This document shows positions 5,566-64,000 of a DNA stretch of 64,000 nucleotides, piece after piece (the first letter of the stretch is position 1; the number at the start of each line of letters is the position of its first letter). Under the pieces are notes generated by a model. That model was not told the origin of the DNA. It searched no databases and saw only the letters and a program-made list of their open reading frames with translations. The DNA comes from Euprymna scolopes (taxonomy: Eukaryota), in assembly GCA_053919585.1 (NCBI GenBank), contig CM132790.1. One strand, given 5' to 3'. The position numbers and the translations under genes are program-made.

Positions 5566-7041
5566 GCTCGGCTTCTTGTCGCGTCATGAATTAAATTTTG
5601 ATCGAAATTAAATAATAAACAAATGATTTATGCTAGAAAAAATGTAATATAAAGATGCAACAAAAAAAAACGTTTTACTCATCTAATTAATCTAAACATT
5701 ATTCTTACATAATTAATACTTGTAATTAAAATCTAAATAAAATATACATATTATTTATAATTTTTGAATGTATGCATTTATTAAATTATTTATTTGATTT
5801 GTACAAATTGATGTACAGTTAAGTTTATATCATAGTTACAGCTATGACAACAGCCTATTTTTCCATTGTTAGTACTGTCGAGTATGTATCCTTTGAGATC
5901 GTATATGCTTTTATATAGAGTGATGTGGTTGTCGATTGATTGAGAGTCAAAAAATAAAAAGAACATTCTGTTGTCATAGCGCTGGCCATGATGTAATAAA
6001 GTCTGCTAAACATTATATAAGACAGCGGGTTCATAATTTCGTTGGGGAAACTATCGCGGCATTACGCGAGACGACGGACTTTCTAAATCTGACGTATCAA
6101 AACACTGTCTTGCATTTGCTTTTTTGTGCATGCCACTATCTATGCATTTAAAATTAGTTGTTTGTCTCTTTTTTCTTCCTATATTCACAACAACTAAAAG
6201 CGAGATTTAAAAAAAAATACTAAGGGAAAGCTAAAATATAAAGGGCACTAATCTGTCCTGGCGACTTTAATCGTGGTATTGAAAAGGACTTCCATCAATG
6301 AACTCCATGATTAAATAATCAGCAATAAATCAGTGCCGACATTTTAGAAACAGAGGACTAAACCTGTCTTAAGTTTTAAGTAATCACATGTAAATGTTGC
6401 ATTTAACACTTTAAAACTTGAAATAATTGTTTGCAGGAAAACTATCAGTTCCGGGCAATGACGTTAGAAAACTACCTGGAAAACAGCAAATTGTTTTAAA
6501 TCCATGAATAGCCATATTGCATTTTTCCATCTTATTAAAAAAGAATATAGGGCAATATAAACTCGATAGGAAACATNNNNNNNNNNNNNNNNNNNNNNNN
6601 NNNNNNNNNNNNNNNNNNNNNNNNNNNNNNNNNNNNNNNNNNNNNNNNNNNNNNNNNNNNNNNNNNNNNNNNNNNNNNNNNNNNNNNNNNNNNNNNNNNN
6701 NNNNNNNNNNNNNNNNNNNNNNNNNNNNNNNNNNNNNNNNNNNNNNNNNNNNNNNNNNNNNNNNNNNNNNNNNNNGTCACAGAAGAGACAACGAAGTAAA
6801 AACAAAATTAAAAGCAATATTCATACCAGAGCAGCAAAACTAAAACTGGGTTTCCAGGACACTATATATTTTAAAATTATAAGCAAATTTGAGACCTTTT
6901 TTTATTAAAAATATAGGCAATTTTTATGTAGTGTCATAGAATTTTAACCATAAAATAGTATTTAAATTATTGAATAACTTGGCAATTTTTATGTACTTTC
7001 ATCCACTAAGATATAAGCATTTTCATATTTATTGGCACAAG

Positions 7042-37822: not shown

Positions 37823-38343
37823 CGAATGATTAAACAGAAGAAAGAGAATGTAGATTTATACTGCAGTCTGTACACCGTGTCGAATATGATGAATTGCACT
37901 GATTGGTGTTTGTAATTACCAGTGCTAAAAGCACACATTGTGCCGGGTTCATTAAGTTATTCATGAAATCGACCTAACATATATTTGGGAAATTATCAAT
38001 GAGCATAGACTATATGTCCTTGGGAATAGAAACACGCACAGATAATGAAACTTCGCCCTGAAAAAAAAGCAAGATGACTAATTGCTGCAAAATGCACAAG
38101 TAATATGCGTTATAGATATTACCAATGTTAAAACACACTACTGATACTTCATCAATCTATACAAATAAGTATATATGTCGGAATCTGTACCACTTTCCCT
38201 ATGTGATGGTAAGTAACATTACATGTGAAGTAAACCAATGTATTGCATTAACACAGCGAATTACTTAAAAAAAAAAAATTGTAAATGGTTGCTAAAACTA
38301 TAAACATGAGAAATATACATTAAATAGAGAAACACACACACAC

Positions 38344-38393
<50 letters not shown>

Positions 38394-39151
38394 TAAAACT
38401 GAAATAACTTTGTAACCGGTGCTATAACCCAACAACTGGTGTACGACTCCCAGTTGCGCAGGTATATATAATCAACGCGATGATAATACGTATTGTTTTA
38501 CTAACGTTTTATCGTCATCATCCCAATTTTTATTTTGTTGTTTTTTTCACGTTCAAATTATCCAAATAAACAATTGTTAATACTTTCTGCATTTTTATAT
38601 CGTTCATTTCCGTATTACCTTTTAGATATTTTAACGCGAGTTTCTTACAAGTAAATCTATTTTAACCCGTTGGCAATCATAAGATCATTTCACAACGGTT
38701 ATTTACCCACTACCTTTCTTTTTTAAATTTATTCTCCATTTTTTAATATACCTTCCTAAAAAAAAAAAACATTCATGAATTTTCTTCTAAACTACCAACA
38801 AAAATGAATAATCCAGAAAATATGTGTGTGTGTTTTTTTTTTAAATTTGCGTTACAAATAAATAATTGACGCGGCAATAACACGTATCGTTTTACTGCGT
38901 ACGTGTTAAGGGTCCGAATTGGTTCTTTTTTGCGTTTAAATTAAAAGATATATCAAAGTTTCAATTTAACTTCAAGTATTATGGTATCTGTTCAGTGCAC
39001 ATTTAGCTATAAATATGGCAAACCACTTTCAATACCTGGAAGTGTTTTTTTTCTTTTCAAAAATAAACAATTATAAACTGAACGAGTCATAGAACTCTGC
39101 CTATATTCCTTTGTCATTTCAATAATATACTGGCCCAACGGGTCACGGGTA

Positions 39152-39199
<48 letters not shown>

Positions 39200-39202
39200 T
39201 TG

Positions 39203-39234
<32 letters not shown>

Positions 39235-39383
39235 TACAGACAACTACTTAATTTACTCACATAAAGTTATTATACGAAAGTCCCGATTTATGCGTAAACT
39301 TTAAGTATTTACTTCAAATGTGCTCAATACGTAGGTAGAGCTAGTTAGTAAGTTATAAAATCGCCGTATACGTGTTATAACTT

Positions 39384-39457
<74 letters not shown>

Positions 39458-39899
39458 TGTGTGTGCAAGCATGTGGGTGTACACAAGTATTTAATCGTTA
39501 TAAACTTTATACTAAATTATTGCTCGCGACGTTACTACTAAAATTATTCGACTACTAAAATGTTTATACTACTCTGTGTNNNNNNNNNNNNNNNNNNNNN
39601 NNNNNNNNNNNNNNNNNNNNNNNNNNNNNNNNNNNNNNNNNNNNNNNNNNNNNNNNNNNNNNNNNNNNNNNNNNNNNNNNNNNNNNNNNNNNNNNNNNNN
39701 NNNNNNNNNNNNNNNNNNNNNNNNNNAAAGAAAGAGAGAGTGGGGGTGTATGTGTTATGTACAGAACGAAACAATGGTTTAGCTTTAATATATGAAGATA
39801 AATAAAAACAAAAGCAAATCAGTATAATTATATTTATTTATCTGCCCATTCAATAGAAAATAATATCAAGTAGACAGTGTGTCGTAACTGTTAGTTATA

Positions 39900-39971
<72 letters not shown>
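37749..39971. repeat. Cluster of (TA)n microsatellites (37749-37820, 38347-38389, 39153-39232, 39389-39453, 39902-39971)
   Basis: Direct reading. Confidence 0.9.
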
Positions 39972-39973
<2 letters not shown>

Positions 39974-42787
39974 AATCCGTACGCTTCTACTCAAAAGAAC
40001 GGATATAGGTATCTCAGTGTCGTACAGTTTTAATCAATCTTATATCATTTTATTTTATTTTTTCTCACTTTACAATTATTATATCATGTAGTTTGTACGA
40101 ATGTATGTTTTTATCTTTCTGAAATTCAAATAAGGTATCCATAATTTAAGAAAAAATGGGAAATAATCATTTTTGTATTTGAATAAATAACTCAATGTTT
40201 ATAAATATTTTTCTAAACACATATAAATTAGATATATAAAATGTAATGACTGGTTGCATCGTATTAATTTTAATCTTTCAAATGTGTAGTCAGTTGTTAG
40301 TTTCTTTGCGTTTTTAATTATGTTACTTTCTGAGTAATACTTATGAGGCAATGGATATATTTCAAATGTCAATTTCACTGTTCAGAGTTTCCTTATACAC
40401 AACCTGCGTAAACTTCCAATAGTATATTATTTGTAATTGTAATCTAATTAAGATAAACACACGACTACTACGCGCTAGAATGCTGAGGACGCAAATTGGA
40501 AGTAAGGATAGGAGAGTACACGGATGGATGGAAACAAAAGGTATAATAGAGTAAAAACCAAAAACGAATTAAAAACATACTAACATGTAATAAACCAAAG
40601 AGTAGGTTATTTTCTGCTATTCTGTTCGATTAATTCTCGAATTTTTTATTCCAACTTGTTTGTCTGAGAAACCTATTCAAATGTCATCAACTGCCTGCAC
40701 GACGAACTATGATCAGAAGAATTGTACAATTATACATTGGTTATAATTCTCACCATTTCTCTTTTTCCTTTCTATAAACAATTGGCTGAATTACTTAACC
40801 TTGTACCAGCCCGGGCGAATTCTATTAAATATACGAAAATATAGGTTAATGTGTGGATTCGACTGATCTTGTTCCATCCCATCTCAGTTGCAGATTTTCT
40901 TCTCTCTAACTCTTTGTAACATACTATCGCACATTTATAATTTCTTTATTTTACAAACACAAAATAGAAAAAAAATCACTAGAACATCTATTTCAATAAA
41001 GAACGCATGCATTAAAACACATATACTCAAATATATAAATGCATGTATTTATGACTAATTATTACCAATTAGCCTAGTATTTACAACTCATACATATTCT
41101 CTACGGACGGTTCATCAGAACTATAAAAACTCGGTGTTGATCGGGATATATTAAACACAAATCTAACAATTATATCATTAATAGTTATCTGGTATTAAAT
41201 AAAAATGTAATTACTCAACCCCATCAAGACAAAATCCTCCAAATAAATCTTATACGATGTTGCAACTAATAAATACACAGTAATATATATTCATGGGGAC
41301 ATTTTAAGTTAGAACATTTAAATATATCAAGATCATATATAAAAATAAAGAATCCCGGACTGCTAGGATACGGGGTATCTACAACACATGTTAGAATGTA
41401 TTTAATATACGTTTGCTTGCCAATTCGTTTCTGTGTGTACGTGTTTATATTTGATGTGTTATACTTTGATATAATCGTATTTAAGAAAATTATGGTCATA
41501 ATTATGGTCAAAAATATGGTCATAATTCAACTATTAAAAAAATCGTAAATGAGGCCAACTTCAAAATAACGTTGTTTTGTTTTTTTTCCAGTAAACTATG
41601 TGCTTTCACATCCAGTTACATTGTTATCACTTTATATTTTCATAAATGGCTTAGAGAACTTTTGCTTACTACACAATTAAACGAGCATGTCATTATGCGA
41701 TTTAAAAAAAAACGAGTACTACCTTATTACGTTTATAAATCGAATCCAAATAGGTTTACTGTAATCGTGTGTCCAGCCAACTGATATAATTGTTAGCATA
41801 CAATTATGATTAATTTGAAACAAAAACATGTGTGTAACTAAAAAACAAGGATAATAACAGATCTCTCTAAGTTTATTACGAGATAGCAGGTATATTTTAC
41901 ATTGCTCCGTCTAAAAACAAAGTAAATAATAATGAATTACAAAACGTGATTAATAAACAGAATTATGTTCAATTATTTAGAAGGTACCGGATATATGGTC
42001 CATCATTTATCTCTTTATACCATATACATGTACTCTCTTACCCTACTCTCAATTTATGTGATAGTATATGCTGAGTTTTGTTAAATACTAAAATGTTAAC
42101 CTAACTCTGTTTCCAATAAAAATATTTATAAGCAAGTATGATCTTCAGGTGAATTATATAATACACTTTCCGTTGTTATAATAGTCGTTATATTTTATAC
42201 ATATGCCTATGTATCCAGGGTGTATCAATGCATCACATATAAAAATTAGGGAGTAAACTAGTGATATAAATAGCTTTCTCCTTTAAGAAAATGCATTTAT
42301 TTATGCAAGAATATTCCTTAATCAAAAGGTAATTCACAGAAGTAAAATGAACAAAAAACAAAACAAAAAAAAAACAAATGTTCAAAGAACTTTTCTAAAA
42401 AAAACAAGGGAAACTACTAATATATTAAACCAAATGCACTTAGATTTGAAAATGAAGATGAATAGGAAATACACTAATATTTTTCCGAACATTTTTCTTT
42501 TACCTGCGGGATATAATATCCATTATTCATAGACGACTATTTTGATGAAATTACAAATGTCATGTCTAGCAAGATTCGTTGGGAAAACTAATTTGTGGTT
42601 CCAAAGTACAAAGTTTTTTAATTCTTTCAAAGTTTTATATATTTTTGCAATTGAGTGCTCAGACAAGACATGAAATCATTCTTTAGCAATGTGCAACCCC
42701 TATATTATAAGCAAAAGGTGTTTTGGCCGTGCCTAAACGAAAACCTACACACGCACAAACGCACGCATACACACACATCCACCCCCC

Positions 42788-42792
<5 letters not shown>

Positions 42793-42850
<58 letters not shown>

Positions 42851-43129
42851 AAAAAAAGAAAAAACACATTGTTTTTTAAAGAAGTTCACAAAGTTGGGTC
42901 CCCATATACGGGGCCTTCGTACGGAAGATGAGAGAGATGATTAGTGAAACAAAATGCAAAATTGTGAGCAGAAAGGCCTATTAGTTTAACCCCTCATAAT
43001 CTTGATCATTCCCTGAAGAAGTTTCCCGAAATTGGGGACAGAAATTAGAAAAAAATAATTGAATTTTTACAGCTCTTTCTTTCTTTCTTTGTCCATAACC
43101 TTATTATATCATACCTATCTATCAATGTA

Positions 43130-45240: not shown

Positions 45241-45599
45241 TGTGGAAAAAAAACTATTTAGAGGGTAAAGTAGATTACCCGGTGATAGCGTAAGCTCCGA
45301 GGCGTTGCAAAGGATGCCCTATGCGACCCCCCTACTGGGTCGAGTAACAAGTTTTGTAGTACGGCGAGCAGCGAGTAACTAATTTGTGCCAACCGTTCAC
45401 CAGTAAGTCATAAACAGAACTGGTACTAGTCAGAGACACAATTCTTTTATAACAGAAGAATAGTGCCTCCCCCTACTCCTCCAAGTCTATAAGAGACTCG
45501 TTCTCTCAACCACTCAGATTAGAATTCCGCCCTCGAGGCCGGAGCCCCCAAGTAAGCAATCTCCTTTTTTATATTTATTTTTATTTTTATTTTCTCACA
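45241..45599 (-). repeat. 3' LTR (359 bp)
   Basis: Direct repeat of 51067-51419 with TG...CA ends. Confidence 0.96.
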
Positions 45600-45607
45600 C
45601 ACTCCCG
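45600..45607 (-). promoter_or_regulatory. Short polypurine tract (PPT)
   Basis: The sense strand reads CGGGAGTG immediately before the 3' LTR TGTG, a typical short BEL/Pao PPT. Confidence 0.7.
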
Positions 45608-45778
45608 ACAAAAACGAGAAAAAAAACAAAAGGTAGAAGAGAGAAAAGAAAAAGAAAAAGTTACATAAAAATGACAGACCACCAAAATACTTAATCAAAA
45701 AACAACTGTTAGTACAATATAGCAGTAGTCGATCAGTCCAGATATCAATCAAGCAGGCAGCGGGCTAGGTCTACCCCG

Positions 45779-45940
45779 TCATTTTTTAAGGGGCGCACAT
45801 TCTGGGCAATACCACTTTTGCCTGTTGGGAGGTTCTGAGTCGATACCGACACATCGGAAATGGTACCAATCGTCGCACGAGTCACACCCGATCATATTCT
45901 GATTCTGCTGCGGAGAGCTGCACAGGGGACACAACCAGAC
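45779..45940 (-). CDS. PHD finger (C4HC3, TAF3-like) at the integrase C-terminus
   Basis: VWLCPLC-x8-MIGCDSCDDWYHFRCVGI-x8-WYCPEC, with all eight Zn ligands present. Confidence 0.93.
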   Translation of the reverse strand, partial: VWLCPLCSSPQQNQNMIGCDSCDDWYHFRCVGIDSEPPNRQKWYCPECAPLKK

Positions 45941-48900
45941 CTGCTCTTCAACACTAGGGGGTAAATCCAACGTCTCCCCTCCCTCCGCAACAGGAGGTCC
46001 TTCAGGAGTCCTAGAAAGCTCTAAGGGGTACAGATGTTTCAGGGAATGTAATTCCTCCAAGCCCTCCCCTTTTTGTACACGTGCTGCTCTAACGACACCA
46101 TCATGGCCTGGAATCAGTTCAGTAATAGTTCCTAAGACCCAAAACGGTCTGGGTTTTAAAGGACTCTCAATCAGCACAACATCATCCTTCTGGAGGCGGG
46201 TTCTTGTACTGAGTCGGGATCGACCAGGAATCTTCCTTCCCAGCTCTAGCAGGTACTCCTCATACCATAGTTTGTGGAAATCTGTCAGACATTGGTCCCT
46301 AAGTTCCAAGGTTTGAATTAGCCTCTCCCTGCTGGGAGGCAACAAGGTTGTTCTATCCTCTCTATCCAGTCGTATCAATAGCCCGGGGCTCTGATTGGGC
46401 TTAAGGAACATATTAGGGGTAATTGGAGTAGCATTTTTGTCGGCTGACACCTGGTAAGTAAGAGGCCGGTTATTAACAGACCTCTGAATATCCGATAACA
46501 CTGTCAGAAGGGTCAAGTAATCCAATCTACCCCTGCCAAGAATCTTAAATAGGCAATTCTTCATGGTCTTGATACATCGCTCCCATGTTCCTCCATACCA
46601 AGGAGAGAACAAGGGAATGGTTTTAAGTTTTAACTTACAAGGACCGTATTTTCTTTGATAGTCCGTAAAAAGAGAGAAACGATCGAAAATCTTTCCACTT
46701 CCTATAAACGTTTTCGCGTTGTCACTATAAAGGGTTTCGGGAACGCCATATCGGTTAGTAAATCGAACCAGTTCCTGGAAGAAAGAGGGTACGCTCATGT
46801 TGGGAACTACTTCAATGTGTATTGCTCTGATATTCAAACAAGTGAACAGGAGCAAGTACATTTTCGTATCTCGTTTCCCGTCACTCACCCAAAGATGGCC
46901 AGTAAAATCAATCCCAGTGTGTTGATAGGGGACTCTGAAATCGGTACGGTGCGACGGCAGGGCAGCAGCAGCATTCGGCGTCACTGGCGTTGAATTATAA
47001 CGTTTACATCTGGCACAAACAGCCAGTACCTTATTCACAGCTTGTCGACCCTGCGGGACCCAATAACCGCTTCGCCTCAACTCCGCTAGAGTTGACCCAG
47101 TTCCAAGGTGGCAACACCTTTCATGACAATCTAAAATGATGAGTCTGGTAACAGAATGATGTTTCCCTATCAGAATGGGGTTTTTAACTTCATAACCAAA
47201 GTGGGAAGATTGGCTGATTCTTCCCCGAGATCGAATCAAACCGTCAGGGTCCAGAAAAAGATCCAGAGCACGAAGCCTAACTGGCATGGGTTTACCACTC
47301 GGCTCCTTTAGGTACTCCACTTCCACGGGGAATTCTTGCCGTTGCACTGTCTTCATAAGGTAGATCGCTGCCTTAGAGTTGTAGTCCCATTGTCGATTAA
47401 ATCGGATGGCTAGGAACTTAAACACCAAGGCAGTAACAGTCAGTAAACCAGAGAATGAGGAAAACCTCTGAAAAGGTATGGCCGAAGTGTACTCTTGATC
47501 ATGGATCAAAGAACAATTTGCTGAACTGCGGGTCATTCGCTGGCATATCTCACTCAAACAGGGCATATCCTGTCCTGGCCATTGAGATATTCCTTCGCAT
47601 AGCCAGGAAGGGCCTGAACACCAAAATTCCATCTTGGATTGGAACTTTCTCAATGTTAATCCTCTTGTTAACAAATCCGCCGGGTTGAGTGTACTATCAA
47701 CATATCTGAAGAGAGTCTTCAAGCCATAGCGAGACTCCAACTCCACTTTAATCTGCAGAATGTCTTTAAGTCTATTTTTTGCAAAAACATTTTTGCTAGC
47801 CATGTTTTGAGATAAAATCCAGGACAAGACCACCTGTGCATCCGTGGCTATACACAAATTCTCGGGAACAAATCCTTCACAATTGTCCAGGATTGTGGGG
47901 AGACACTTGAAGGCGAGGAAAACGGCCATTAGTTCCAACATAGACAAAGTCTTGTCCTTCATAGGTGCCACCTTAGCTTTCGCAAATAATAAGGATGACC
48001 GACCATTTTGTACGATATACACGGCAAACCCATATGCTTCCTTGGACGCGTCGCAAAACAGGTACATATCTCCAGGCAGCCCTGCCCTAAGCGCCTTGCG
48101 CAAAAAACGGAAATCACTCAACCATGAAAGGTCCCTGGCTAGTGCTCTCCAATCGCTCAAGATCGCTGGCTGGAGTGGATCATCCCAACCTGCACCATTC
48201 TTCTACATGGACCTGATTAGCACTCTACTGCGGATAGTAACCGGGAGACATAGGGACAACGGATCGAAGACCTTAGCTGACTCTGAAAGAACACCTCTCT
48301 TAGTTGTCACGTCAGGATTGCACTTTACCGGAGCGACATACAACTCCTCCGAATGTGGGGAGTATCGGTAGCCCAGTACTCTCTCCCACTCCTCTTCATG
48401 GATACTTAGAGTACCATCCTCCTTCATCCTATTGCGGAGCGCCTGACTGTTTGAATTGCATTACTGGATAATAAAGCCCCCTTCCAGCAAACGCTCTCTA
48501 ACAAGGGAATACAATGTAGTAAGCTCACTCGCGTCTGCCACGGATGCCACAAGGTTATCCACATAAAACCGGTCCTCCATCATTCTGCGGCAAGCATCCT
48601 GCGGGTATTTTGCCGCATGCAATTTTAAGATTCACCCCAACACAAATGGGCTGGAGGTAAACCCGAATATCAAGGTGGTATAGCGGAAGCAGCGCAAACA
48701 ATCTCCTTGTTTAAGAAAAAAGCAAAGCCGGTTCCTATCCGCCTCCAGCTTAAGCCGAATCATTAGGAAGGCTCGGCGAATGTCTGCTAGTAGCACATAA
48801 TTGTTGGCTCTAAAGGCCAGCAACAACTTTAAGATGTCCCCTGTTAAGTTAACGCCAGAATATGCTGCTTCGTTCAGCGATAATCCATCTCCTGTCTTCA

Positions 48901-51019
48901 AACTACAGTTGAACACTGGTCTGATCCTGGTAGTTGCCGTAGGGTCCGACTTGAAAACTGGTCTATGTGGTATCCACACATATTTGTCGAACTCCTGAGG
49001 GGAGACAAAAATCTCTTCAATTATACCGTCCTCCTGTTGCTGACGAAACACCTCCAAATATTCATCATATATTTTTCTTTTAGTCAAGTTTGCTGCTACC
49101 CGGTCTAAAACATGCAAGGAAGTTGCATGATTAGAGGGGACTCTGGCTAATCTATCGTGATGCCAGTGGAGCTCCACATAATAGCTTCCATCCCGAAGCT
49201 CTACCGTTTCCTCAAATCGCTTCATCTGCACTTTATCGTTATCAGAAAAGTCCTCCTGACTGGGAAGCCCCAGAGATTCCAACGTAAACATTTGTTCTAG
49301 TCCTCTTTGTACCATATTGTCAGGAAAGCACTCCGCCATGGGATCCAGGTATGTTGATTGTGTTTCAAGGACAAAACATAAATGTGATGAATCGACCTGG
49401 GGGGTATGTTCCATTACCGAATTAAACGAGAGGTGAGTAACCTCAGAAAGGGGCTTATCTTCCAAGAAAAAAGAATCCACTGCTCCAAACGGGACCAATC
49501 CGGGCGGGGTTGCAAAGGCCCATCCATTCAAACACGGGATCAGCTTCAATGAGTCCAGGTGTTCAATCAGGTCTAACCCAATTATTCCCTTGATCGGTAT
49601 TAAATCCTTTCCGGTCTCAAACTGGCCGGCCAAAGCATATTTTGCATCCTGAAAGACACGTAATAGAGATTCCAGGTTGGCCACTCGAACCGACAAGTCC
49701 ATACCATCGGCTACCAAGACAGGAGATGTCACAGTCCTTCCAGAACCCAAGTCAACTCCCAGGACTACCTCTGTGAACCCACGCTGACACTCACCAAGAA
49801 AGGTAGACAATCTCAGCTGACAATTGACACCAAGGGTTTCGATTGGGCACAAAGTTCTCAGTACATCTGCCGCCAGATATGTCCGCCCGCTACCCGTGTC
49901 CAGTAGGCAAGTCACTGACACTGTCTTTGGTCCACAAGAGAATGTAACTGAGAGAATGGGTGGCAACGTGCGGGAATACCCGGTTGAAGTTGCATTGTTC
50001 ACATCCACATGAAAAGAAGGAGTGATAGCGTTCCCCCTACCAAACTTTTGAGACGTATTCTGTCTTACTGTTGATGTAAATGCAGTGGAGACACCGCCCT
50101 TAATCTTCAATCTCTTTATTGCTTCTCCAGTTAGTCTCAATATGGAGGACAAAGGTGGCACCCGTCTATTTGTTAGCGCTATTATCTCCCCTTTCAGTTC
50201 GAGAGGAAATTTCCTAAATAGAATCTTAGCCATCAGTCTGGCTCCGCCAGAATCGTCCACAAAAAAGTCACACGAAAAGGAATTCCCCAGCTCTTCCAAC
50301 AGCGATGCCCTCCTGGAAACGAAGTCCCCCAGCTCAAAAAGGGCTCCACTTTTCTTTGGTACATAGTCCAGAATATCCTGGAATATTTGGTCAATGATTT
50401 CATCCAGGTCCAGATACTCCCTCTTCAGTATAGCCATGGCTTGCTGGTAATTGGTGTCAGTGCAACTCAGGTGATTTACCAGCGTCAAGGCTCTGTCTGA
50501 GAGTGAACACTTCAAGAAGTTCAACCTCTCGGCATCATTGGCCATGCCGATCACGCAGTTCTCAAACCTAGTCAAGAAGTTTCTGAAACTCATGCGGTCG
50601 GACTCCATTTCTTGTCCGCTAAATGTAGGCCCTGTGATCTGTATACGTGGGGGTTTAACAATGAAGGAAGAACCTCTCCCGGTAGTTGCAGAAGCCCTTG
50701 AGAACTCAAAGGCAGATTCCGAGTAAGGGCTGGGCTCTGGCTGTCGGTATGCTTGATCCAAATCGCCCAAGTCTTCATAATAATCCTTTAGCTGAGGCAG
50801 CCAAGCACCCTCAATCTCGGCAGGTGTACTCTCATCAAAGGAGCCTAACTCCAGCTGTGTGATACAAGTCTCTAACTCGACAATGAATTGTCGAATCTCC
50901 GTCCTTAAGAATGAGTACGCCGATGGCCTAACTCCATCACGACACATCTTCAGTCGTCCCTGAATCTTCTGAGTCAATGACTCCCTTCTGCGTAGGAGCT
51001 GCTCTTTCGTGACGTTCAT
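45779..51019 (-). pseudogene. BEL/Pao gag-pol polyprotein (~1746 codons): Gag (DUF1759-like), aspartic protease, RT, RNase H, integrase and C-terminal PHD finger; three in-frame stops
   Basis: ORFs 48632-51064, 48203-48427 and 45779-48160 share one frame, with stops at 48632-4, 48461-3 and 48203-5. Motifs: PTFSG, LLDTGSGRTY, IPHRPVFK..TTRIRPVFN, ADIRRAFL, FGFTSSPF, FYVDN, FDPL, FCDAS..AYG, AKAKVAP, LELMA, TDAQVVL, NPADLLTRG, H..H/C..C, GIDFTG, SDNAKTF, GGTWER, LYPLE. First ATG at 51019. Confidence 0.95.
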
Positions 51020-51053
51020 GACAGTAGTTAACCGACGAAAGAGTAAGCAGCAA

Positions 51054-51064
51054 ATCCTTTGCAA
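51054..51064 (-). promoter_or_regulatory. Primer-binding-site position: non-tRNA, complementary to the element's own LTR
   Basis: Sense TTGCAAAGGAT begins 2 nt after the 5' LTR and is the exact reverse complement of LTR 51131-51141. There is no TGG. Confidence 0.65.
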
Positions 51065-51066
51065 GA

Positions 51067-51419
51067 TGTGGAAAAAAAACTATTTAGAGGGTAAAGTAGA
51101 TTACCCGGTGATAGCGTAAGCTCCGAGGCGTTGCAAAGGATGCCCTATGCGACCCCCTACTGGGTCGAGTAACAAGTTTTGTAGTACGGCGAGCAGCGAG
51201 TAACTAATTTGTGCCAACCGTTCACCAGTAAGTCATAAACAGAACTGGTACTAGTCAGAGACACAATTCTTTTATAACAGAAGAATAGTGCCTCCCCCTA
51301 CTCCTCCAAGTCTATAAGAGACTCGTTCTCTCAACCACTCAGATTAGAATTCCGCCCTCGAGGCCGGCGCCACCAAGTAAGCAATCTTCTTTTTTTATTT
51401 TTATTTTTATTTTCTCACA
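51067..51419 (-). repeat. 5' LTR (353 bp)
   Basis: Direct repeat of 45241-45599, differing by 3 substitutions, a 1-nt indel and a ~5-nt indel. Confidence 0.96.
51243..51276 (-). promoter_or_regulatory. Putative LTR core promoter (TATA + Inr)
   Basis: Sense TATAAAAG starts at 51276, and the A of an Inr-like CAGTT lies at 51246, exactly 30 nt downstream. Confidence 0.55.
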
Positions 51420-61625: not shown

Positions 61626-64000
61626 TTTACGTAGATGTTTTTATTTGTTTTTGCTAGCGATACTTTCTTGAATGAATTCAAGTGTTTATACGAAAGTGCA
61701 TTTTTACCTAAATGCTTGTTGGGAATAATTTTAATATATTTANNNNNNNNNNNNNNNNNNNNNNNNNNNNNNNNNNNNNNNNNNNNNNNNNNNNNNNNNN
61801 NNNNNNNNNNNNNNNNNNNNNNNNNNNNNNNNNNNNNNNNNNNNNNNNNNNNNNNNNNNNNNNNNNNNNNNNNNNNNNNNNNGACAGAGAAAGCGAGATA
61901 TAGATGCATAGAGAGTGAGCTAGATAGAGAGATAGGCGTTATATGTTGCTCCAGTCTAGTCAGTATTTATACAACCATTCATATGAAAATCAAATATCTG
62001 ATCGATTATTAGATTACGGAGAAATGATCTTTCACCTTCCGTGTGTCAGGCTTTACGAGTTATTTCTCTATTATTGTGAATAAGGACACTTTGTCTTGCC
62101 GTACTAATATTTTGCAAGATTTCATATGCTGAAACAGACACTATATCTTGAACGATAAATTAAAAATTAGAAATAGGATAAATTGCTTTAATAGATATAT
62201 CTTATTTATATTGACACGCGTTTTTCCATCGCGTTACACACCGTGTTTAAATTGGCCCATTGACACAGATCGTACTCGTTAGATAATCATATTTTGCAAC
62301 TCTGAGACTGACCAAGACTAAATTCCCTACCAGAAATAGCGGTTTTTCTATTTGCGCCAATGTTATTTCTAACTTTTTCCAAATGTCCATTACGTATTGT
62401 CACCTGATTCAAACAGTGTCGAATAAAAGTAGATGAGGGTAATTGTCACGGTTAAGGTTAAATATATAATCTCTAGTTTTAAATTAGCAAAACTGCAGAT
62501 CATTTTCAGACTTTATCAACTCAGTATTTGTGTAATTTCTAAATGTAAATTTATAATCGATTTTTGTGTATGTCGTCTGTTCATTTGCAGATCATATAAG
62601 CCTTATGAAAACAGGCATGCTCAAAAGTATTCATATATAGATATGAAATCGAAACTGTTTGGAATCGATAGCTTTAGTCTGTGTCTGAGACGTTAACGCC
62701 AGTTGTTTGAAAATGGCGAGTCGTATTTCCAGCTTTTAAGATGAAAAGCAAAGTTGGCCGCATTTGGAACGGATCCCGTTTGACCGCAGGTGTCAGAAAC
62801 GAAAAAGGAAGAATAGAATAGAAATCGAATTTTCAAGGACTTTTTTCCACTGATCTTTAGAATCTTGGATGTTTACTTGCCAAGAGAATTGGGTAAACAA
62901 CAGAAGCGAATAGAAATAACAGCCGTTCCTTTAATCTTTAGTGAAGGTTTTATATATTTGAGAAGGATGAAGCGAATTTCATTAACGAGACAGATAATAA
63001 AAGGAACCCGTTGAACTCATCTCTGCCTGAATGTAAAATAAGAAATAGTATACATAAGAAGCTGCGCACATTACTATATGAATATGTATATGTAAGGATA
63101 TTTGTGGGCAATAATAACGTGGTCAAAACTGTAATTTTCATTTTAAAGTTTAACACAAAACGCCTAAAGCTGTTAGAATTAATCAAAACATGTATTTATA
63201 GTTAAATATTTATTGTAATATATGGTAAGCTGGATACCTACTTAAGAAATGCAATATTACCAAGAAAATCTACATAAAGTTGAACTTTCTGCGTTATAAA
63301 TAAGGATTTGTTAGAGATTTGCGACCCAAAATCACACTAATTATAATATTGCTAATAGTCATTTGGTTATTCAGACAACCGTGTTCATGTTAGTTATTGA
63401 CGAATTACAAAAATGTTGGCTGAGAGAATATCTAAGTATCCGCATTTAAACAATCCGATTCCTTCATTGTGTATTGCTANNNNNNNNNNNNNNNNNNNNN
63501 NNNNNNNNNNNNNNNNNNNNNNNNNNNNNNNNNNNNNNNNNNNNNNNNNNNNNNNNNNNNNNNNNNNNNNNNNNNNNNNNNNNNNNNNNNNNNNNNNNNN
63601 NNNNNNNNNNNNNNNNNNNNNNNNNNNNNGCGATTAAGCTACACTGAATATTCAGCGTTTCATTCACTATAAGATTCGTCAGGCTCATGCGAATTCTGTG
63701 GTTGTTTCTCGTTTTTATATATGTTGAAGGATTTAGTTAGCCAATAAGCTTTCTAGTATCCGCCTCGACCCTTCCTTTCAGCCAATGGACATGCATTTTA
63801 TCGAACAAAGGATCCGTTTTAGAACTAGTTTAGTGGTTTTAGGCAGACGATTTTCCTCATTTTTGCTCATTTTTTATATATATATAAATATACCAAAATG
63901 ACCCAAGATGGTAAAATTAAAGTAAACTATAAATATTAAAGAATTAATATTTATCAACTTATCTCAGCCAGATAAAAAAGCTCGATAAAACAAATAGGAA

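Follow-up and report, generated by a model that had tools for sequence, protein, structure and literature searches.

Among long terminal repeat (LTR) retrotransposons, priming of reverse transcription by the element's own RNA (self-priming) has been demonstrated for Tf1 and inferred for Tf2, Tj1, the Tf1/sushi and Tcn1 chromoviruses and the TAR lineage of copia elements. In Tf1, the RNA's first 11 bases serve as the primer, and RNase H cuts between bases 11 and 12 (PMC7175516). The self-primer of Tj1 was predicted from the complementarity of its LTR and its primer binding site (PBS) (PMC4600332), and for the TAR lineage of Ty1/copia (Houba, Osr-1) and the plant and fungal Tcn1 chromoviruses self-priming has been predicted from sequence alone (PMC6317226). 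Other copia elements (Osser, Bryco, Bianca and Drosophila copia) are primed by half-tRNAs, and their PBS matches an internal part of one host tRNA and is shared within the lineage (PMC6317226). It has also been proposed that hairpin priming preceded tRNA priming (PMC3601003). According to the profile of the International Committee on Taxonomy of Viruses (ICTV), BEL/Pao elements are primed by tRNA-Arg or tRNA-Gly (PMC8742986), and published canonical PBSs begin with TGG, as does TGGTAGCAGAGC for tRNA-Met. Here we describe a BEL/Pao retrotransposon in a stretch of 64,000 nucleotides (nt) from Euprymna scolopes (contig CM132790.1 of assembly GCA_053919585.1; this whole stretch is called the window below), in which the bases following the 5' LTR are complementary to the LTR itself, and which is likely to be self-primed in the manner of Tf1. 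The element lies on the minus strand, and positions are those of the window unless another contig is named (Table 1).

The 11-mer at the PBS position, TTGCAAAGGAT, and an 11-mer within the LTR, ATCCTTTGCAA (the arm), are perfect reverse complements over 11 bp. The initial annotation of the sequence had pointed out this match, placed 2 nt after the terminal CA of the LTR, as well as a gap of 47 nt without TGG between the LTR and the start codon of gag, and both are borne out on the minus strand. A tRNA 3' end (CCA) would require TGG at the PBS. Since no TGG is present in the 47-nt leader from the LTR end to the gag ATG (51019), the element has no ordinary primer binding site for a tRNA 3' end, a feature with which BEL/Pao elements have been described; a tRNA PBS is a description of BEL/Pao as studied so far and stands outside the phylogenetic definition of the family. 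As in Tf1, Tf2, Tj1 and the Tf1/sushi elements, the PBS adjoining the 5' LTR complements an upstream stretch of its own RNA, no tRNA-type PBS is found, and the length of the duplex is equal to the 11 nt of Tf1. The chance of such a match had been put at roughly 1e-4 per tested offset, which proved to be of the right order. When the LTR or the leader was dinucleotide-shuffled (20000 shuffles each), a perfect complement of at least 11 nt, starting 0-6 nt after the LTR and located anywhere in the LTR, was obtained in 16 of 20000 cases with the LTR shuffled and in 5 of 20000 with the leader shuffled (p ~3e-4 to 8e-4). When only an offset of 2 and arms at most 200 nt away were allowed, 11 nt were reached in 10 of 20000 shuffles. 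The minimum-free-energy fold of the 96-nt segment from the arm to the PBS is closed by the helix (z = -4.5, with 0/200 shuffles equally stable), and the fold of a 231-nt leader is likewise closed by the pairing of arm and PBS.

Compensatory changes across related families had been set beforehand as a test of the pairing. When the gag protein was used in a full HMMER search and clusters and contigs were then looked up, two diverged families emerged, both on short Logan contigs, namely L002 (SRR8281666; L005 from another sample, SRR29271457, is identical to it across the region) and L003 (SRR8281685). Their gag proteins are 34-47% identical to that of the window element and 39% identical to each other. 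The LTR of the window element ends with TTTTCCACA followed by TC, and the homologous ends are TTTTTGACA followed by TT in L002 and TTCTCAACA followed by TT in L003. In both families a helix begins exactly 2 nt after the inferred LTR end, as in the window element. In L002 and L005, the arm GTTTTCTTTTGTAA and the PBS TTGCAAAAGAAAAC form 14 bp with one G-U pair, the 3' end of the arm being located 58 nt before the inferred LTR end, and in L003 the arm TTTTTTCACAA and the PBS TTGTGAAAAAG form 11 bp, also with one G-U pair, with the 3' end of the arm 78 nt before the inferred end. The observed helix length was matched at the fixed offset in 2 of 20000 shuffles for L002 and in 227 of 20000 for L003. 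MAFFT placed the L003 arm out of register, and pairs were counted on arms excised by their coordinates and anchored at the primer 3' end. In the anchored helices, all 11 positions pair in all three families (33/33 cells); 5 of the 11 pairs have changed on both sides and one on one side, and only 42-61% of the cells pair when the register is slid by 1-3 columns. The remaining LTR is far more diverged: column identity averages 60-70%, and the gaps are long. In each of the three families, the minimum-free-energy fold of the segment from arm to PBS closes with the helix, whereas the interiors of the loops differ and are not conserved in L002 and L003. The GCA core of the arm is replaced in L003 by CAC, with GTG in the PBS. 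Both 11-mers of the window element contain the palindrome TTGCAA, through which each could pair with its own kind on a second RNA; the palindrome is kept in the L002 PBS and lost in the L002 arm (TTGTAA) and in both L003 sequences.

It is very likely that the helix between arm and PBS is an RNA pairing under selection. As the PBS differs from family to family and each matches the LTR of its own element, intramolecular pairing is favoured over a host tRNA or tRNA half common to the families. The end of the LTR is set by the 3' end of the minus-strand primer, and the two bases past the CA of the LTR are those normally trimmed by integrase. A helix that stops 2 nt past the CA in three families, together with the missing TGG and the family-specific PBS, would thus be explained most simply by the Tf1 mechanism. 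It is likely that the 11-mer after the 5' LTR is the PBS for the minus strand and that the primer is the element's own RNA, and the tRNA-independent, Tf1-like self-priming suggested in the initial annotation is supported by the family comparison. In this mechanism, the arm of the genomic RNA, AUCCUUUGCAA, would fold back onto the PBS over a loop of 66 nt (64 nt of the LTR and the UC spacer). The reverse transcriptase (RT)/RNase H of the element would cut the RNA where the arm ends on its 3' side, between A51131 and 51130, a site that we infer from the end of the helix abutting the 2-nt spacer. From the new 3'-OH, synthesis would run through the spacer and then the terminal 64 nt of the LTR and give the minus-strand strong-stop DNA, which would transfer to the copy of that segment at the RNA 3' end. 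As a corollary, the plus-strand strong-stop DNA would copy the primer, so that in every cycle the arm would serve anew as template for the PBS, which would itself keep the two sequences matched. The cleavage and the extension are predictions of the model, and the arm is a candidate for the 5' end of the transcript.

The window element may work like Tf1, as its PBS complements an upstream stretch of the transcript and this complementarity is conserved while the sequence changes, yet it is placed outside the Tf1/sushi clade. The Tf1/sushi elements are Ty3/gypsy chromoviruses with a chromodomain in the integrase tail, whereas the window element is a BEL/Pao element (DUF1759 gag, Peptidase_A17, DUF5641) with a PHD finger (8.6e-11) in the tail. 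Moreover, the primer of Tf1 is the 5' end of the RNA, whereas the arm of the window element is a candidate primer with the only strong TATA/initiator (Inr) motif 105 nt upstream. The element resembles canonical BEL/Pao elements (Belpaoviridae, Semotivirus) in its domains, LTRs of a few hundred bp, TG...CA termini, short target-site duplication and metazoan host, but these are described as primed by tRNA, whereas the window element is without a TGG-type PBS and its PBS matches its own LTR. In the TAR lineage and Tcn1, self-priming has similarly been inferred from sequence and outside Schizosaccharomyces pombe, but they belong to other superfamilies and have plants and fungi as hosts, and our inference also uses compensatory changes between families. 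The half-tRNA-primed copia elements are alike in having a PBS that neither starts with TGG nor complements the 3' end of a tRNA; however, their PBS is shared in the lineage, whereas here it varies by family and tracks the LTR. No link between BEL/Pao and self-priming was found in the literature searched, which left out most subscription journals and Repbase Reports, and an earlier mention is possible.

Several observations weigh against self-priming by the arm. The comparison consists of three families, and the nearest relatives (gag identity 55-66%; ERZ21867824 and the Acanthosepion pharaonis assembly) are outside it. The LTR ends of L002 and L003 (GACA and AACA, respectively, plus TT) were placed by homology and not by a second LTR, and the arms of L003 are T/A-rich and only modestly beyond chance (p ~0.01). 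The L002 leader has a TGG in TGGTATAACTGAG (L002 416-428), 18 nt past the inferred end of the LTR. None of the three leaders has another TGG, and this one, located in AT-rich sequence, is without a counterpart in the window element or L003. The model requires polyadenylation to take place somewhere from the arm to the LTR end, and no canonical AATAAA occurs in this segment (51130-51067), so that an R region for the first-strand transfer cannot be pinpointed. Finally, the predicted transcription start is 105 nt upstream of the arm, and a long 5' tail of the primer would complicate the plus-strand transfer.

The position of the transcription start also separates two forms of self-priming. A terminal primer of the Tf1 type needs a start at 51141, whereas the TATA/Inr predicts it at about 51246. 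This had been raised as a caveat in the initial annotation, and the motifs were confirmed: TATAAAAG with the Inr-like CCAGTT is a candidate start and the only strong TATA/Inr in the LTR of the window element, and no TATA was found about 30 nt upstream of the arm (51141). The block falls in a 30-nt gap of the L002 LTR alignment, being missing from that LTR, and is not conserved in the lineage. It is possible, although we regard it as somewhat unlikely, that the self-primer is internal, with transcription starting at the TATA/Inr and the primer released from within the leader, and that self-priming has an independent origin in BEL/Pao. Such a primer would need either two cuts or a tail that brings its length to about 116 nt, and its processing would differ from that of Tf1. 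A long-tailed internal primer would let the plus-strand strong-stop run past 11 nt, which on mechanistic grounds would favour either initiation at the arm or a second cut.

Covariation proves that the two segments pair, not that they prime, and the helix could be real and selected but serve a regulatory or structural function, such as masking of the PBS, packaging, dimerisation or control of translation, while some RNA acting in trans would be the primer. A start at the TATA/Inr 105 nt upstream would put the arm inside the leader, the palindrome TTGCAA of the window arms could mediate RNA-RNA contacts, and the helix may be likened to retroviral U5-leader or U5-IR stems. However, the helix ends in three families exactly at +3 after the CA, the place set by the 3' end of a primer. 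In addition, the leaders, which are 41-74 nt long, hold no other candidate PBS, with no TGG in the window element or in the 41-nt leader of L003, and the palindrome is missing from L003. We therefore regard a purely regulatory helix as improbable.

Less probable still is a PBS complementary to an internal fragment of a tRNA, in which case the match to the LTR would be incidental or the LTR would mimic the tRNA. Such half-tRNA priming is documented in Ty1/copia lineages (PMC6317226). One candidate in the window element would be a 5' tRNA half whose end is an anticodon loop with the sequence UUUGCAA. We take UUUGCAA to have the form of a UGC anticodon loop, but in L003 CAC and GTG stand in place of GCA, and a common anticodon loop is thus not kept. 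Sister families would also be expected to share the primer, and hence the PBS, whereas the three PBSs (TTGCAAAGGAT, TTGCAAAAGAAAAC and TTGTGAAAAAG) differ and each is matched by the arm of its own LTR. An Rfam scan of the LTR and leader gave no match to tRNA or any other RNA family. Neither in the window nor in the loci of the relatives did ARAGORN detect a tRNA gene. A chance match or functionless inheritance is the least credible explanation, as, although many features of the 64-kb window had been scanned in the initial annotation and the T/A-rich L003 helix would alone reach only p ~0.01, the shuffle frequencies at the fixed offset are 5e-4 (window), 1e-4 (L002) and 1e-2 (L003) and the helix has remained fully paired through its double changes in a heavily diverged LTR.

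Other loci were considered in the search for relatives. In L005, TGTGG was rejected as the start of the LTR (giving an LTR of 116 nt), as L002 aligns with the LTR of the window element much further upstream. L004, a single locus from a scan of Joint Genome Institute (JGI) metagenomes, was spurious, with one long open reading frame (ORF) spanning the match and no retroelement features upstream, and a scan of viral contigs found no relatives. The remote BEL/Pao relatives L001 and L006 from TARA metagenomes have a gag about 30% identical and no definable LTR end; a terminal repeat of 298 nt in L001 was rejected as an LTR, since it looks like an assembly overlap, and L006 is without a second LTR. 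No comparable helix was seen in L001 and L006, and with their LTR ends undefinable neither bears on the extent of the trait. When about 400 start positions were scanned in L006, no helix of at least 10 bp was found, and thus such helices are not a common background in leaders of this kind.

Both small hairpins reported in the initial annotation, CGACCC/GGGTCG upstream of the arm and GGGTAA/TTACCC within the loop, are present (Table 1). The former is part of a block, GTTAC..GACCC-loop-GGGTCGCA.AGG (window 51150-51176, minus strand; L002 286-316), that is more conserved between the window element and L002 than any other part of the LTR. The stem bases GACCC...GGGTC are invariant between the two, without covariation, and the block is not evident in L003; it may be a core promoter or an RNA structure. 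Three overlapping AATAAA motifs are located within the first 30 nt of the LTR (51390-51412, minus strand) and are the only copies in the LTR, and L002 does not have them at its LTR start.

The element is a complete copy of a BEL/Pao retrotransposon in its structure. The two LTRs are 97.5% identical in alignment, both begin with TGTGAG and end with CCACA, and the element (45241-51419) is flanked on both sides by a 4-bp target-site duplication, AATA. In minus-strand order, the Pfam matches are DUF1759 (1.2e-07), Peptidase_A17 (2.3e-12), Integrase_H2C2 (2.2e-07) and DUF5641 (4.8e-10), and the same domain set is present in the relatives. The domain content and the order of gag, protease and RT, then integrase, as well as the TG...CA termini and the short target-site duplication, thus place the element in BEL/Pao. 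The RT core between the two ORFs (48160-48634, minus strand) has a stop at 48632-48634 and several frame changes, with short ORFs only, and therefore the copy is not intact. Despite its 97.5% identical LTRs, it is not coding-competent.

Table 1. Features of the BEL/Pao element and of its proposed priming region in the window.
Feature	Position	Strand	Basis or remark
LTR arm ATCCTTTGCAA, proposed self-primer	51131..51141	-	perfect complement of the PBS; covaries in relatives
LTR segment from arm to LTR end, 64 nt; stem-loop with GGGTAA/TTACCC hairpin (51106-51089) and T8 run	51067..51130	-	fold
Spacer TC between LTR-terminal CA and PBS	51065..51066	-	TT at the same place in L002 and L003
PBS-position 11-mer TTGCAAAGGAT	51054..51064	-	sequence, shuffles, covariation
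Hairpin CGACCC-AGTAG-GGGTCG, 8 nt upstream of arm	51150..51167	-	within block conserved with L002; not evident in L003
TATAAAAG (51276-51269) and Inr-like CCAGTT (A at 51246), candidate transcription start	51243..51276	-	sequence
Complete BEL/Pao (Belpaoviridae) LTR retrotransposon copy, 6179 bp	45241..51419	-	LTR pair from repeats and alignment; Pfam domains
5' LTR, 353 nt, TGTGAG...CCACA	51067..51419	-	identity with 3' LTR stops exactly at these bases
3' LTR, 359 nt; intact second copy of the arm at 45315-45305	45241..45599	-	repeats, alignment
ORF1: gag (DUF1759), protease region, start of RT	48632..51019	-	Pfam, ORF
ORF2: Pao 'Peptidase_A17' region, integrase (H2C2, DUF5641), C-terminal PHD finger	45779..48160	-	Pfam
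gag ATG, 47 nt past 5' LTR	51017..51019	-	N-terminus aligns with gag proteins of relatives
Short purine run GGGAG(TG) directly upstream of 3' LTR	45600..45606	-	resembles a polypurine tract by position alone

The integrase has the PHD finger (Pfam 8.6e-11, C4HC3 pattern) as its C-terminal tail (45797-45931, minus strand; residues 744-788 of ORF2), and an ORF with a PHD finger also follows the integrase in the relatives from sample ERZ21867824. PHD domains are known from other types of retrotransposons, and no report of a PHD finger in BEL/Pao was found in the literature searched. The purine run GGGAG(TG) is the only one adjoining the 3' LTR, is preceded by a long T/C-rich stretch and, if it is the polypurine tract, is unusually short for an LTR element. 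No further copies of the element were found within the window. Among proteins, it is matched best by gene models of the cuttlefish Acanthosepion pharaonis that are unnamed or mis-named; two of these, P0005 and P0171, named 'SARS' (serine--tRNA ligase) and 'adk', are 60-64% identical to the gag of the element, and retrotransposon sequence has probably been merged into these host gene predictions. The surroundings of the element include dense (TA)n microsatellites at 38300-42900, the GC content of the window is 33%, and it holds nine runs of 133-235 N, which are masked or are gaps (6577-6775 ... 63480-63629).

Experiments have demonstrated self-priming only in Tf1-type Ty3/gypsy elements, and it has been predicted for a few gypsy and copia lineages. 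If the BEL/Pao lineage described here is self-primed, each of the three superfamilies of LTR retrotransposons would have gained or kept this mode of priming, which would bear on the proposal that priming by hairpins came before priming by tRNA (PMC3601003). In that case, the lineage would be expected to escape annotation pipelines that demand a tRNA PBS, or to be mis-scored by them. The lineage would also provide a second, unrelated system for studying how RT/RNase H cleaves an RNA duplex.
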